A stretch of DNA of 9,270 bases from Fonticula alba ATCC 38817 (GCA_000388065.2 KB932205.1), one strand, 5' to 3'; shown: positions 1 through 8,412, counted from the stretch's first letter. Notes: generated by a model not told the origin, from the letters alone. Program-made: numbers and translations.

Positions 1-175
1 CCCCCCCCCCCCCCCGCCCCCGCTCCCTGGGCTTTGGCGCAGTCCCTTGGCCCTCCTGCCTGGGGCGCTTTGCACCTGCACGCGGTCCGCTCATGTGCCC
101 GATAGCTGACATGTCCCCGGCGCGTGTGGCCCGGTCTCTCGACCGTGGCGTTGCCCGGCGCGATGGCCTGGCTAG

Positions 176-289
176 GAACGAGTGGTGGATCCGACGATCG
201 GCCTTCCGCAAGGCGCGCGAGATCCAGCTGGTCAACCAGAAATCCGAGCTCCTCCTGGAGATGCTACTGCCGAAGTACATCCGTCGCAA
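176..289 (+). CDS. Cyclase exon: helical/coiled-coil domain preceding the catalytic domain
   Basis: Acceptor TAG at 173-175, branch-like CTGAC at 106-110, donor GTGCGT at 290. Encodes NEWWIRRSAFRKAREIQLVNQKSELLLEMLLPKYIRRK, resembling the 'LL.N.LP..V' helical domain of transmembrane cyclases. Confidence 0.8.
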
Positions 290-3200
290 GTGCGTGCCGA
301 CATTGGGGGACCGCCCTCGCCCCGGCCGCCCGGCCCTCCGGCCCTCCCACTGACCGTGATCCGGCCCCCGCCCTTGCGCCGGCCTCCCCCGACGGCCGGA
401 TGCATGCACGCAGGATCAGCGAGACACCCAACCTGCGAAGCATCGCCGAGTCCTTTCCCCATGTGGCGGTCATCTTCCTCAGTGTCACAAGTGCGTGGGC
501 TTCGGCGCCGCCTGGCCCTCCTGAGACACGCCCGCTCGCGGCACCCGCGCACGACGCAAGCAGCACACCGCCCCTCCGCCCCCGTGCCCCGCCATGCATG
601 GAGTCCACCCGCGGCCGGGCCGCGGCCCGGCTGCTCCGGGACCCTTTCACCCCGACGCTCACACATCCGCCCCCGCCCCCGCCGCCCCCGTGCCAGACTT
701 CCGGCACTCCAGCATGGAGAGCGCCAACTGGATCGAGATGCTCAACGAGCTGGCCGTCGTCTTCGACGAGGTCATGAGCATGTACGGCGCGCTGAAGATC
801 AAGTTCGGCGGGGCCACCTGGCTGGCCATCGCCGGTGGCCCGGCCGACCTGGACCCCAAGCTGGAGTACCCGCCGCTGCCGCTGGCCCTCTACTCCAGCG
901 GCATCGGCCGCGGCGGGACCAGCATCAATGTTCGCCGGCGCATTGCCGATCTCTTTGCCCAGTGCGACGATGACTTCGAGGATTTGGACTGGGCCCTGGC
1001 CGCGGCGGCGGCCATGGCCCGCGAGACGGCCGCCTCGAGCAAGCATCGCCAGGCCGGGCTGGCCGAGGGCCCGGCTCCGGAGGGGCTGCTGCTCGAGGCG
1101 GCCGGCACCGGCGGCCGCCAGACCCCCGGGGCTTCCAACGGCCTGACCGTCCTGTCGCCCAATGGCCTGGCCGGCCAGGCGGTCACCTTCCCCGGGGCGG
1201 CCCGGGCCAGCCAGGCCGGGGACGTGGCCCCGCGAGTGGCCCGCGACACCGACCAACTGGCGCAGGCCCTCCAACGGGCCGGGTCGGCCATCCTGGAGAC
1301 CGTCAGCCTCAGCCCGACGCACTCGGCCGACCTGGAGTGGGCGCGCCAATCGGCGCACTCCTTCGGCGCCGGGGGCATGGGCCACCACGGCGCGGGCCCC
1401 GGGGCGGCCGGGGCGCTGGCCGGCCGGATGGACCGGCCGGCCGGGCCGGCCGGCGCCAGCAGCGCCGGGCGCCGGCTCCTGTCGGCCGGGCTCGGCCTCG
1501 ACCTCGGCCCGCCCTCGGACTTGTCTCTGGCCACCAGCCACCCGGACAGCCTCCGGGCCGTGGTGTCCGACACCGAGCTCGATGTCCTGCTGCACCGGCG
1601 GCACATGCCGCCCGGGGGGGCTTTGGACCAGCCGGCCGCCGGCCTGGCCGCCGGGGGGGCCTACCCTCGCCAGCGCCAGTCGTCCCTCTGGCCCGGGGGC
1701 GAGCTGCAGGACGGCCTGCCCAGCCCGGAGGCACGGGCGACCGGCCCCTTGAAGCGCCGGCTGCCCCGGCGCCTCCTCCGGCGCAGCAACTCCTCCCTGC
1801 ACCAGCGCCCGGCGGCCGAGAACGGGGCACTCAGCCGCTTCAGCTCGGCCTCCAGCCTCGGCCATGCGGCCGACAACATCTACCAGCAAATATACTCCCG
1901 GCAGATGCTGTCCACCACCGGCGGCCTGGTGGGGGGCTCGGCCGCGCGAGGCCGGCCCAGCGGCCAGGCCCGGGCCGCCCTGGCCCTGCGCCGGTACCAG
2001 CAGCACGCCGGCGGGCTGGACCCCGAGTCGCTGGAGGCGGCGGCCGTGGCGGCCGAGGTGGCGGCCGATGCCGCCGTCGCCGCCGCCGGCCACGGCCTCG
2101 GCCCCGACCCGGGCCCCGGCCGCAAGCGCCCCAACCCCCTGCACCAACGTAGCCGCCTGCGAAATATGATCCCCCTGAAGCCGGCGCGCCGGGGGTCGGC
2201 CGGCGCGCCGGCCGGCGACCCGCCGCCCCGCTGGCATCGGCGCCGGTCGCTCGACCGATCGGCCTCCGGCCCCATGGGCCCGGACCGGCAGTCCGATGGC
2301 GGTCCCAGCCCCGGCCGCAGTGGCAGCCGCAGCCGCAGCCGCAGTCGCCATTCGAGCCCGGACCGCGCGCGCCAGCCTGGCCGCCGGGCCTCGCCATCCC
2401 GGTACGATGGGGCGCTGGAGGGACACCTGGCCGGGCAGGCGGGCCACCGGCCGGGCCATGATGCCGAGGCCCGGCACGCCGAGAAGCCCACCTGGCTGCG
2501 GCGCCTGAAGCGCCAGCTGGTCCTGGAGCGGCGGTTCCCGGCCACCCTGGAGCCGATCGCCCTGGCGGCGCTGATGTCCTCGCCGCCGGGGCCTGGGGCC
2601 GGCGGGGCCCGCGCCACGGCGGCCAGCGGCCGCCGCGCCTCCCCGATGGCGGCCAACCCGTCGGACTGCCTGCTGGGCCTGCCCGGCGCCGGGCGCCTGT
2701 CCAAGCGGAATTCCCTGCTGGTGGAGGCCGGGCGCTTGGCCACCGGGCCGATGGCCGAGCCCGGCATGGCAGGCCGCTTCCCCGCCGCCGGGGGGGGGAC
2801 CCCCCGCCGGGGCAGCGCCGCCATGGGCCCGGCCGCCGGCGACCCGGCGCACGACTACCCGGTCCCCCCCTCGGACCAGGGCCCGGGCTTCGATGCGGTT
2901 CTCCAGGCGGCCGCCGACAGCCAGCGCCAGGTCCCGGACCTGGAGGCCGACCTGGAGGCAGGGCTGGACCACCAGGCCGATGACGCCGGCGGCCCCGGGG
3001 CCGCCGGCGGCAACATCGCCCAGTTCTCGTGGGCCAACTTTTGGCACGCACAGCGCCGGGCCTCCTCCTCCACGAGCAACATCTCCGGTGACAGCCCGCC
3101 CGAGCAGGCGGAGTCCTCCTCCGGCGGCGGGTCAAACTCCGAAACCGACCTCTTCACCCGGGTCCGCACGACCCAGCAGCAGGCGGCCCAGGCGGCGGCC

Positions 3201-5205
3201 GTGGCCGCGCGCCCGGAGGGCAGCACATCGCCCGGCCCCGGGTCATCCGGCCTCCTCGCCGGGCCGGGCCTCTCGCGTCCGGAGTCCACACTGCTGACCG
3301 GCGAGCGGTCGGGCAACATGGCCCACGGGCGCCGGCGATCCCTCCGCCCGGGGGCCGGACCCGGCGGCGCTTCAGCCACCACCAGTGGCGCCGGATCCTC
3401 CGGTCAAGCAAGCGGCGACTCGGCCGACAGTACGGCCGAGGGGGCCCCGCCGGGCCCGGCCATCGGCGGCGGCGGCGGCGGCGGCGGCGGCATCCTAACC
3501 AGGCTCGGCCTCAGCCGCCGGCCATCGCAAAACATCAATCTCTCGGCCCTGGACGGCGCGCAGGGCAAGGGCCCGGCCCCGGGCACCGCCCCCGGGGGGG
3601 GGCCCCTGTGCAGCGCCCACCTGGAGGAGCGTGAGGATCCGGCCGACCCCCCGGCCGAGGGGCTGGATGAGGCGGAGCAACAGGCGGAAAGCGCGCACGA
3701 GCTCTTCCTGCGGGAGCTTCGGATGCCGGTCAGCCGCCTGCTGCTGATGGCCATCCACCTGCAGAATACCATCGTCAACTTCGGGTCCAAGCACCGGCGC
3801 GACTTCCAGGTGAAGGCTGGCTTGCACGGTACGCGCGCAGCTGTCCGATGCCGGGGGCGTCGCCTTCCCCCCTCCCCCCCTCTCTCTCCCTCTCTCGCTC
3901 TCTTTGTTTCGCTCCTTTCCAAGCCGCCACGCGGCCCATGATCCGTGGGCTGGGTCGCGTGCTGCCACGGGCACCGCCCTCCCCGCCGCCATCTGCTCGG
4001 CCATGTGCTCGCGCAATGTGCCTGCCACTGTGTCGACCCATGCGTGTACCTGCACCTGATCTCACACATGCACCACCCATCCACACGCCCGCATGCCGCT
4101 CTCGACCCCTCCTCCCCCNNNNNNNNNNNNNNNNNNNNNNNNNNNNNNNNNNNNCCCCCCCCCCCCCCCCATCCCCCGGCCCCCGGGCCCGCCCGCTTGG
4201 TGGCCACACAGTCGGCCCACTCATTGCCGGGGTCATCGGCACGGACAAGTTCGCCTACGACGTGTGGGGCGACACGGTCAATGTGGCCTCACGTATGGAG
4301 TCCACCAGCCACGAGGGCCGGGTGCAGGTCACCCGCGCGGTCATCGAGGCCGCGCCTAGCATGTTCAACTTCGAGCTGCGCGGCAACATCCAACTCAAGG
4401 GCAAGGGCCGCATGCGGACATACTTCCTGCGGGATGTCATCGCCGACCGCAAGCAGTATTGGGTGCGTGACCAGCTGGCCGGAGCCACGATGGGCCCCCG
4501 GCCGCGGCTTCTCCTCCAACCCTTGGCGGGCGGTGGCACTCCCAGGGGGCAGCATGGCAAAGCATCTCCCGCCTTCCCCTCGCCCTTGCATTTGCCGGAC
4601 ACACCCACTAACTCCAAGGGGGGCGGGAAACCCAGCTCACCGACATGCCGGCCCTCAGCCACTCGCTGTCGGCCCCGACCGACCTCTTTGGCGAGGAGGC
4701 CGCCAGGCCGCCGGCCGGGGCCGACCTCTCGACCCCGCGCTTCACCACGGTCCCCTACACGGGGTGGCGGTCGCGGTACACCGCCCCCCCGGGCCGCGAG
4801 GCCCAGGCCAAGGTGGAGCCGGCTTCGCGCGACCAGCCGCCCGACCGGGACCCGGAGGTGCCGCCCTACCACGGGGCCAGCCCGCTGGAGGGCCGCCGCT
4901 TGCAACCGAACATCCCGCCCGGGACCGGCGTCAACCCCGGGACCCCCCTGCTGGAGGTCTTCCCCCTGGCGGACACGCGCAAAGATGCCGTTCTGCTGAA
5001 TGCCCAAACTATACCCCCGGGCCAGGCCACCGGCACTCTGCCGCCCAAGCGCATGTATTACCCCCGTGCCCTGGGGCTGGAGGGGGTGCAATTCCGCGAC
5101 GGCGGCGCGGCGTCCATCGCCCTGCGCGCGTGGGCCACCCAGCCGCTGCTGGCCATGGTCACCCTGCAGGAGACCTTGGAGAAGATCGAGAAGTGCGGAC
5201 CATGA
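176..5205 (+). CDS. Class III nucleotide cyclase, probably adenylyl cyclase (C-terminal part, 5'-partial, spliced; about 1380 aa in the window), with a giant insertion in the catalytic domain
   Basis: Joining 176-289, 414-490, 697-3828, 4212-4462 and 4636-5205 at GT..AG sites keeps one frame. It yields a helical-domain motif (SELLLEMLLPKYI), then IAESFPHVAVIFLSVTNF, LNELAVVFDEVM, LKIKFGGATWLAIAG, VKAGLHVGPLIAGVIG and KFAYDVWGDTVNVASRMES...RGNIQLKGKGRMRTYFL, the class III cyclase signature. Lys (801-803) and Asp (4259-4261) are the ATP-selecting residues. Confidence 0.9.
414..490 (+). CDS. Cyclase exon: start of catalytic domain (beta1)
   Basis: Acceptor CAG 411-413 and donor GTGCGT at 491; phases match both neighbours. 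Encodes ISETPNLRSIAESFPHVAVIFLSVT. Confidence 0.85.
697..3828 (+). CDS. Cyclase exon, 3132 nt: N-half of catalytic domain, ~960-aa insertion, then alpha3-beta4
   Basis: Acceptor CAG 694-696 and donor GTACGC at 3829. Uninterrupted frame with mostly G/C third positions and cyclase motifs at both ends. Confidence 0.82.
3465..3491 (+). repeat. Coding (GGC)9, poly-Gly in the cyclase insertion
   Basis: Read directly; in frame with exon 697-3828. Confidence 0.9.
4119..4153. other. Assembly gap (35 N) inside a cyclase intron, flanked by C-runs
   Basis: N run followed by 17 C. Confidence 0.99.
4212..4462 (+). CDS. Cyclase exon: C-half of catalytic domain
   Basis: Acceptor CAG 4209-4211 and donor GTGCGT at 4463. 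Encodes VGPLIAGVIGTDKFAYDVWGDTVNVASRMESTSHEGRVQVT...KGKGRMRTYFLRDVIADRKQYW. Confidence 0.93.
4636..5205 (+). CDS. Cyclase exon: C-terminal extension of unknown function (ends at TGA 5203-5205 or splices out at 5192)
   Basis: Branch point CACTAAC 4606-4612 and in-phase acceptor CAG 4633-4635. This frame has strong G/C third-position bias. No recognisable domain. Confidence 0.68.
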   Translation, partial: LTDMPALSHSLSAPTDLFGEEAARPPAGADLSTPRFTTVPYTGWRSRYTAPPGREAQAKVEPASRDQPPDRDPEVPPYHGASPLEGRRLQPNIPPGTGVNPGTPLLEVFPLADTRKDAVLLNAQTIPPGQATGTLPPKRMYYPRALGLEGVQFRDGGAASIALRAWATQPLLAMVTLQETLEKIEKCGP

Positions 5206-5288: not shown

Positions 5289-5302
5289 CGCGCGCGCGCG
5301 CG
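5289..5302. repeat. (CG)7 tract
   Basis: Read directly from the sequence. Confidence 0.9.
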
Positions 5303-5321
5303 GCCCTCACCCCCATTCGCC

Positions 5322-5342
5322 CACACACACGCACACACGCAC

Positions 5343-5391
<49 letters not shown>

Positions 5392-5423
5392 CACACAGAC
5401 AGACAGACAGACAGACAGACAGA
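5322..5423. repeat. Compound microsatellite: imperfect (CA)n followed by (CAGA)7
   Basis: Read directly; CAGA copies at 5396-5423. Confidence 0.95.
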
Positions 5424-5690: not shown

Positions 5691-7277
<1,587 letters not shown>

Positions 7278-7412: not shown

Positions 7413-7520
7413 NNNNNNNNNNNNNNNNNNNNNNNNNNNNNNNNNNNNNNNNNNNNNNNNNNNNNNNNNNNNNNNNNNNNNNNNNNNNNNNNNNNNNNNN
7501 NNNNNNNNNNNNNNNNNNNN
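7413..7520. other. Assembly gap (108 N) between the head-to-head CCDC137-like and COMMD2-like genes
   Basis: N run preceded by 22 G. Confidence 0.99.
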
Positions 7521-7684: not shown

Positions 7685-7911
7685 GTGCGTTGGCAGCAAG
7701 CCCTGTGTTTTGGTCTGGCGAATGTTTATTCCTCCCCCTCCCCACGAAGGGGCCCCGCAGGCGCGGAGAACGAAGGCCGGAGGGCGGAGGCGACGCGCCC
7801 CACACCGCCGGGCCCCATGCCAAGAGGCGCCGGCTGGCCGGCTGGCTGGCTTGAGAGACTGCGCCAGCGCTCCTACCCTCCTCTCGCCTCCCCCCCCCCA
7901 CCCCCCTCCCT

Positions 7912-7927
7912 GCACACACGCACACGC

Positions 7928-7985
<58 letters not shown>

Positions 7986-7986
7986 A
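7912..7986. repeat. (CA)n microsatellite with a few CG/TA variants, in a probable COMMD2 intron
   Basis: Read directly from the sequence. Confidence 0.95.
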
Positions 7987-8034
7987 TCCCCCCCTCTCCC
8001 CTCTCCCCGACACGCCGCCCCGATGGAGATCCAG

Positions 8035-8412
8035 AGCTCCGCCTCGCTCCCCTCCTACCAGGACCTCTCCTGGCGACTGGATATCAAGACTGCCTCGCGC
8101 TCCATCCGCGGGCAGATGACCCCGGTCTTTGTGTTGATGTTTGTCCTGGACAAGCCGGACGGCAGTGCGCAATCCATCTGGCGGCCAGCCGGCCGGCCTT
8201 TTCGCCTCGCGTCGCCCCGCCTCGCGCCCTCGCTCCCCTTCCATGCTGCCTGCTTGCGATTGACCCCATGCACGCCGCCCCGCTCAGCCACCGAAACCCG
8301 GGTTGTCGAGGCCGATCCCAACACCATCGGCCACCTGGCCCAGACCCTGGAGCTGGCCCTGCGGGAGTCCTCCTCGGCCCACTCGCGCCGTGTCACCCGC
8401 AACATCCACTAG
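8035..8412 (+). CDS. COMMD2: COMM-domain protein, COMMD2-like (5'-partial; exons ~8035-8164 and 8288-8412)
   Basis: SLPSYQDLSWRLDIKTASRSIRGQMTPVFVLMFVLDKPDGTTETRVVEADPNTIGHLAQTLELALRESSSAHSRRVTRNIH* matches recalled human COMMD2 (SLPSYHNLEWRLDVQLASRSLRQQIKP...TDPATLLHLVQQLEQALEEMKTNHCRRVVRNIK). Donor GTGCGC at 8165, acceptor CAG 8285-8287. The 5' boundary is ambiguous (AG ending at 8028, 8034 or 8036, or ATG at 8023). Confidence 0.88.
   Translation, partial: SSASLPSYQDLSWRLDIKTASRSIRGQMTPVFVLMFVLDKPDGSAQSIWRPAGRPFRLASPRLAPSLPFHAACLRLTPCTPPRSATETRVVEADPNTIGHLAQTLELALRESSSAHSRRVTRNIH

Follow-up and report, generated by a model that had tools for sequence, protein, structure and literature searches.

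The DNA considered here, a stretch of 9,270 nucleotides (nt) on scaffold KB932205.1 (assembly GCA_000388065.2) of Fonticula alba, a slime-mould-like fungal relative, is referred to below as the window; its guanine-plus-cytosine (GC) content ranges from 65 to 82 %. On the plus strand it carries H696_03556 (P0001), whose product of 1402 amino acids (aa) bears the UniRef name adenylate cyclase, and in which the cyclase homology domain is interrupted, between strand beta3 and helix alpha3, by some 960 residues of low-complexity sequence encoded without a break in a single long exon. A five-exon model (111-289, 414-490, 697-3828, 4212-4462 and 4636-5205) gives a translation identical to P0001, and the translation of exon 3 alone (window 699-3827) retrieved H696_03556 from a public protein search at 100 % identity and full coverage. 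Every intron of this model opens with either GTGCGTG or GTACGCG and has CAG at its end. The parts of the locus on which the argument draws are listed here.

1-110, plus strand: sequence that follows a scaffold gap; frame open from base 3, a poly-C tract, CAG at 39-41
111-289, plus strand: exon 1 of the public model; helical linker preceding the catalytic domain, LLEMLLP motif, AlphaFold helix with a predicted local distance difference test score (pLDDT) of 81-94
414-490, plus strand: exon 2, 77 nt; strand beta1, with Ser83 (FLSVTNF) at the position of the first metal-binding Asp
697-3828, plus strand: exon 3, 3132 nt, a single open exon; alpha1 to beta3, insert, alpha3 to beta4
697-842, plus strand: catalytic domain, N-terminal piece, through beta3; Lys121 (adenine contact), Ala125 replacing the second metal Asp
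837-965, plus strand: proximal insert, residues 133-175; also conserved in H696_02815, the paralogue (GGP..PPLP..YSSG)
843-3725, plus strand: insert by Pfam boundaries, residues 135-1095, 961 aa; no Pfam domain inside
855-3635, plus strand: predicted disordered part, residues ~139-1065; AlphaFold pLDDT mostly <50, few weak helices
2187-3527, plus strand: RRxS cluster (eight RRxS and one KRxS, by motif count), residues 583-1029
2487-2537, plus strand: basic amphipathic stretch WLRRLKRQLVLERRF, residues 683-699; weak predicted helix
3666-3828, plus strand: helix alpha3, N-terminally extended (residues 1076-1117), and the start of beta4, by Pfam and AlphaFold
3829-4211, plus strand: intron GTACGC...CACAG, C-rich, with a gap of 36 N at 4119-4154
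4212-4462, plus strand: exon 4, 251 nt; beta4/beta5, alpha4, beta7-8; Asp1146, Asn1153, Arg1157, Lys1192
4636-5205, plus strand: exon 5; C-terminal tail of 190 aa lacking any recognised domain, and the stop codon

Coding potential of the long exon

Is an exon of this size coding throughout, or does it conceal introns that the public annotation passed over? The initial annotation had described window 837-3722 as about 960 stop-free codons within one 3.1-kb exon, set between short exons and free of the splice donors and repeats that mark the introns of this DNA, and the gene model bears this description out. The interval equals residues 133-1094 of P0001, i.e. 962 in-frame codons with no stop; the exons on either side of exon 3 measure 77 and 251 nt; the plus strand is devoid of GTRCGY sites from 497 to 3828, and all four introns of the gene begin with such a site; and the microsatellites of the insert are short ones only, e.g. 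(CGG)9 and (CAGCCG)7, with no long repeat array.

An open frame is nevertheless weak evidence by itself, because the GC content is 78 %. The base frequencies at the three codon positions predict approximately nine stops in the 962 codons of the insert, against none found (probability of none ~1e-4), and 0 of 2000 shuffles produced a stop-free frame. Each of the remaining five frames of the insert contains between 4 and 9 stops, and over exon 3 as a whole the coding frame runs unbroken for 1043 codons. Moreover, GC at the first, second and third codon positions (GC1/GC2/GC3) of the insert stands at 0.78/0.64/0.92. In 49 out of 51 windows, each 120 nt long, GC3 is 0.8 or above and exceeds GC1 and GC2; the remaining two are Gly/Ala/Pro-rich stretches. 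The period-3 power of the insert reaches 105 times the mean, and the encoded sequence is dominated by Ala (16.6 %), Gly (14.4 %), Ser (10.0 %), Leu (9.7 %), Arg (9.7 %) and Pro (9.3 %), which together account for 70 % of it. None of the four introns of the gene has a three-base pattern, and in all of them C is far above G.

These measures bear directly on the possibility of an annotation artefact, whereby unrecognised introns would remove part or all of 843-3725 from the mRNA and leave a true loop that is much shorter. Such a reading draws some credit from the Fonticula paralogue described below, whose equivalent loop holds a probable intron overlooked by the public annotation. It has to contend, however, with a coding pattern that continues over all 51 windows, when the real introns of the gene are C-rich and lack it, and with an exon interior that offers no plus-strand GTRCGY donor over 1043 open codons; we regard it as very unlikely. 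Judged from the sequence, 843-3725 is real coding sequence, and the insert would be expected to be translated in vivo.

Two further observations concern the same exon. Approximately three plus-strand GTRCGY sites would be expected in 697-3828, and their complete absence could reflect either selection against cryptic donors or chance. Overlapping the insert on the minus strand is an open frame of 927 aa (264-3047); Pfam gave no match to it, its openness stems from the G/C at sense third positions, and it was rejected as a gene.

Identity and predicted fold of the interrupted domain

The Pfam profile PF00211 matches the protein in two pieces, positions 3-68 at residues 71-134 (28.2 bits) and positions 74-182 at residues 1096-1203 (103.4 bits), both of which exceed the curated cut-off of 21.9 bits and so place the domain among class III nucleotidyl cyclases. 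The 961 residues in between (135-1095) occupy the place of five profile positions, and a Pfam search of these residues detected no domain. The split at profile positions 68/74 falls where the initial annotation had located it, between beta3 and alpha3. A MAFFT alignment set the ASGL residues of relatives beside residues 1072-1077 rather than 129-134, which moves the boundary by a few residues only.

To which half of a cyclase does this domain correspond? Searches with the C-terminal piece returned animal and chytrid membrane adenylyl cyclases as top matches. Against ~50 two-domain cyclases this piece scores 70-98 bits with C2 domains and 30-45 bits with C1 domains, and among solved structures 82.7 (C2) versus 28.9 (C1) bits with human adenylyl cyclase 5 (AC5) and 76.2 versus 32.5 bits with AC9. 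Both metal-binding aspartates are replaced, by Ser83 in FLSVTNF and Ala125 in KIKFGGATW, where the C2 domains of relatives read FASIxNF and KIKTIGSTYMA. At the same time, the full C2 contribution to the shared active site is retained, namely the adenine-contacting Lys121 and Asp1146, the ribose-contacting Asn1153, the transition-state Arg1157 and the phosphate-contacting Lys1192. A helical linker lies directly ahead of the catalytic domain; alignment to solved cyclases begins there, and AlphaFold predicts helices at model residues 2-34. By these sequence criteria the domain is the C2-type half of a membrane adenylyl cyclase of the animal AC1-9 or Dictyostelium ACA type. A C2-type half of a class III cyclase cannot catalyse alone. 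Since both metal aspartates are absent, the domain must pair with a C1-type half rather than act as a stand-alone cyclase, the pair being predicted to make cyclic AMP (cAMP).

Could the giant insert instead be a symptom of relaxed constraint in a decaying, non-catalytic pseudo-cyclase? The loss of both metal-binding aspartates, together with a Pfam score of just 28 bits for the N-terminal piece, might be taken in this way. That loss, however, is the normal C2 pattern of membrane cyclases, as the FASIxNF and GSTYMA motifs of relatives illustrate, and all five C2-contributed residues survive, AlphaFold is highly confident of the fold, and codon bias and open frame are maintained. We consider decay very unlikely.

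The initial annotation had further proposed that the domain folds around a disordered loop, and structure prediction agrees. AlphaFold, given residues 30-1229 and an alignment built from 26 C2-type relatives, joins the two flanks (pLDDT 81-94 for residues 30-138 and 88-98 for residues ~1074-1219) into one canonical cyclase fold, with alpha3 extended N-terminally to residue 1076. The model superimposes on the C2 domain of rat AC2 (1azs_B) with a Z score of 21.5 and a root-mean-square deviation of 1.6 A over 179 of 189 residues, spanning model residues 42-1175, and on 5o5l_A with a Z score of 25.1; across rat AC2 C2 (1AZS), human AC5 (8SL3), AC9 (6R3Q/7PDE) and AC8 (8BUZ), all of the same fold, Z ranges from 20.5 to 22.7. 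Residues with pLDDT <50 number 843 in the whole model, and ~840 residues of the insert are predicted to be disordered. The two flanks are thus predicted to form one complete cyclase fold across an insert that would be almost entirely intrinsically disordered. Its few helices are weak (pLDDT 45-65). One of them covers the basic stretch at residues 683-699 (WLRRLKRQLVLERRF), a candidate docking helix whose hydrophobic spacing resembles that of known calmodulin-binding helices.

The rat AC2 C2 domain is 36 % identical to the Fonticula domain and shares with it the animal C2 residue pattern and the preceding helical linker. The likeness ends at the loop, which comprises 13-20 residues in the C2 domains of animal membrane cyclases and 961 in H696_03556, and at the N-terminus, in that animal membrane cyclases possess membrane regions and a C1 half, parts which in H696_03556 would be hidden by a scaffold gap. 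This gap, of 3774 N (L001 6117-9890), ends at the first base of the window. Upstream of the annotated Met (111) the frame is open back to base 3, and the annotated N-terminus contains no membrane helix; in the paralogue, the last membrane helix immediately precedes the homologous linker. The gap, the open upstream frame and the missing membrane helix make it very probable that the public model has lost its 5' end; translation probably starts elsewhere than at the annotated codon at 111. H696_03556 may belong with the upstream gene (1772-aa product), and the C1 partner half would most likely be encoded upstream in the same gene, beyond the gap. The open frame L001:327-3884 had no match in a word search, Pfam detected no cyclase in L001:1-375, and a BLAST comparison of the latter piece with the C1 tail of the paralogue was not significant.

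The Fonticula paralogue and the rarity of the loop

The initial annotation had suggested looking for paralogues with an insert at the same loop, and one is present in the Fonticula genome. It is annotated as two adjoining genes on scaffold KB932204.1, H696_02815 (P0214, 1781 aa) and H696_02814 (P0134, 289 aa). In P0214 a first membrane region is followed by a C1 domain that has both aspartates; after a long linker come the second membrane region, a linker helix and a C2-type N-terminal piece. P0134 begins at helix alpha3 and is 60 % identical to the C-terminal piece of H696_03556. The pieces of the two products share one frame and show the same C2 residue pattern as H696_03556. In the region concerned (L002 8879-10400, KB932204.1 reversed), the public split between the two genes falls inside the beta3-alpha3 loop. 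A candidate intron at L002 9631-10080 (GTGCGG...CACAG), purine-rich, full of GA microsatellite and with no coding pattern, would join them in frame as one gene; the joined protein would show the order membrane 1 - C1 - membrane 2 - C2 in a single chain and have ~240 residues in the loop. The C1 domain of P0214 also has an extra stretch of ~85 residues (residues ~446-535) between alpha3 and beta4, which is a different loop.

Identity between P0214 and H696_03556 is 42 % in an alignment that takes in linker and N-terminal piece and continues for ~40 residues into the insert, as far as residue 173 (GGP..PPLP..YSSG). Because the insert occupies the same site in both paralogues and these ~40 residues are common to them, the loop appears to have been enlarged already before the two diverged. 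Beyond that point they differ: the insert varies approximately four-fold in length, with ~240 residues and no RRxS in the paralogue versus 961 and an RRxS cluster in H696_03556. The recurrence of same-loop inserts suggests a lineage habit of the Fonticula cyclase family, taken to an extreme in H696_03556, rather than a one-off event.

How unusual is such a loop elsewhere? In the 119 nearest relatives recovered by a word search, its median length is 7 residues, with 13-20 in C2 domains and a maximum of 124. An exhaustive search of 1.84 billion representatives, with no limits on length, widened the comparison to ~395 domains of 263 proteins, 98 % of which have a loop of 30 residues or fewer, the largest real values being 124, 106 and 70. 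Apparent loops of 512-725 residues were rejected as pairing artefacts, in which a C1 N-terminal piece was matched to a C2 C-terminal piece because the C2 N-terminal piece went undetected. The initial annotation had stated that this loop is normally short and that many orthologues with an equally long insert would speak against its reading; short loops are indeed the norm, and nothing beyond ~124 residues was seen among the ~395 related domains. The same searches revealed neither a homologue of the insert outside Fonticula in the 1.84 billion representatives nor an orthologue of H696_03556 from another species. The insert is already contained in the public protein record, and the literature searched holds no paper describing it, Fonticula cyclases, or an insert at the beta3-alpha3 loop.

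The insert is nonetheless an instance, extreme in size, of a known phenomenon, the expansion of low-complexity loops in a compositionally extreme genome. Long, low-complexity, fast-evolving surface loops of biased composition also lie inside conserved folds in Plasmodium, Dictyostelium and Chlamydomonas. The Fonticula insert differs from these in its bias, which is towards Ala/Gly/Ser/Pro/Arg and driven by the 78 % GC, and in its size, approximately five times that of the host domain.

Possible regulation, wider meaning and neighbouring sequence

What purpose, if any, might a disordered loop of this size serve? A lead is given by a cluster of RRxS motifs, of which the insert contains 8 versus 1.2 expected, a number reached in 0 of 2000 shuffles; with shuffling confined to 50-residue blocks the expectation is 1.4. 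The RR dipeptide is followed by xS in 8 of its 20 occurrences (binomial P = 4e-4). The related spacings and orders RRS, RRxxS, SxRR, SRR and SxxRR are all at background, and neither SP nor PxxP is enriched in the insert. Adding one KRxS, the nine sites lie at residues 583-1029 and carry Ser in every case (586, 603, 651, 734, 758, 792, 875, 967 and 1029), never Thr. The excess lends indirect support to the regulatory or scaffolding hub suggested by the initial annotation, and a regulatory role may be regarded as plausible.

An alternative is that the insert is neutral filler, translated and disordered but functionless, which is tolerated on a surface loop, and that the RRxS excess stems from CGG/CGC-rich DNA or from testing a pattern after it had been seen. 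The four-fold difference in length between the paralogues, of which only the first ~40 residues are conserved, the want of RRxS in the shorter insert and of any Pfam domain in the longer one, and the doubled frequency of RR itself (20 versus 9 expected), which suggests a bias at the DNA level, all fit this alternative. It accounts less readily for an excess that is specific to one offset, Ser being enriched solely at the RRxS spacing and not at adjacent spacings or in reverse order, that survives shuffling within 50-residue blocks, and that involves Ser and not Thr at all nine sites. Neutral filler as the whole answer is unlikely in our estimate, though it retains appreciable weight.

A more specific proposal is that the loop acts as a built-in cAMP feedback device. 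In mammalian membrane cyclases the regulatory regions, i.e. the N-terminus, C1b and C2b, are disordered and phosphorylatable and tune the catalytic core; AC5 and AC6 are under feedback phosphorylation by protein kinase A (PKA), and AC9 is autoinhibited by its C2b tail. These segments lie between or after the domains, whereas the Fonticula loop is located inside the catalytic fold, and phosphorylation there is a prediction. The stimulatory G protein of animal cyclases docks in a groove to which alpha3 contributes. It is conceivable that a disordered tether of ~930 residues, anchored at the N-terminal end of the C2 alpha3, would cover this groove or the active site to a degree shifted by PKA-type phosphorylation of the eight RRxS sites. 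We consider such a device doubtful; were it real, regulation would sit within the catalytic fold and not in a flanking C1b or C2b.

The explanation that we favour, and hold to be reasonably probable as a whole, is that of a disordered coding loop of ~960 residues at beta3-alpha3 of a C2-type half-domain, which is paired with an upstream C1, has grown by expansion and carries an RRxS cluster open to regulation by a kinase. On this explanation, the flanks would fold into one catalytic half-domain despite the loop, and this half-domain would pair with a C1-type half, most likely from the same gene beyond the gap. The loop would have been enlarged before the paralogues split and would then have undergone the low-complexity, GC-driven growth typical of the Fonticula alba genome. 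For the most part it is probably surface filler that the protein tolerates, and the RRxS cluster in its distal half might serve as a substrate for a basophilic (PKA-like) kinase that regulates the enzyme. Several points weigh against this account. The AlphaFold alignment is shallow, with 27 rows, and the public gene model may be based on prediction alone. The RRxS pattern was first seen by eye on the very sequence in which it was then counted, so that the test is not independent, and the ~240-residue insert of the paralogue contains no [RK][RK]x[ST], i.e. the sites are not conserved there. Finally, the product of the upstream gene has no Pfam hit on record.

Translation of the loop, if it takes place, would mean that a cyclase catalytic half-domain accommodates within its fold an insert five times as large as itself. 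In the C2 half, the beta3-alpha3 loop would then be a very permissive site, of possible use for engineering sensors or tags into cyclases, and nature would have supplied a case in which to ask whether low-complexity expansion driven by GC can acquire a regulatory use. The analysis further points to two likely misannotations in the sole Fonticula genome, H696_03556 being cut by a gap and its paralogue split into two genes. Since aggregation in Fonticula evolved independently, the synthesis and control of cAMP in this organism bear on comparisons with Dictyostelium.

The remainder of the window adds a few minor features; Rfam gave zero matches in it. Short N gaps at 4119-4154 and 7413-7520 are bordered by poly-C or poly-G tracts, the former lying inside the intron that separates exons 3 and 4. 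Long microsatellites, of CA/GT and of GA, occur in intergenic and intronic sequence at 5290-5400, 6000-6300 and 7880-7990, downstream of the cyclase gene. Two neighbouring genes are present, one on the minus strand (5691-7277) with a 356-aa product that weakly matches CCDC137, and one on the plus strand (8023-8412) encoding an 88-aa COMM-domain product.

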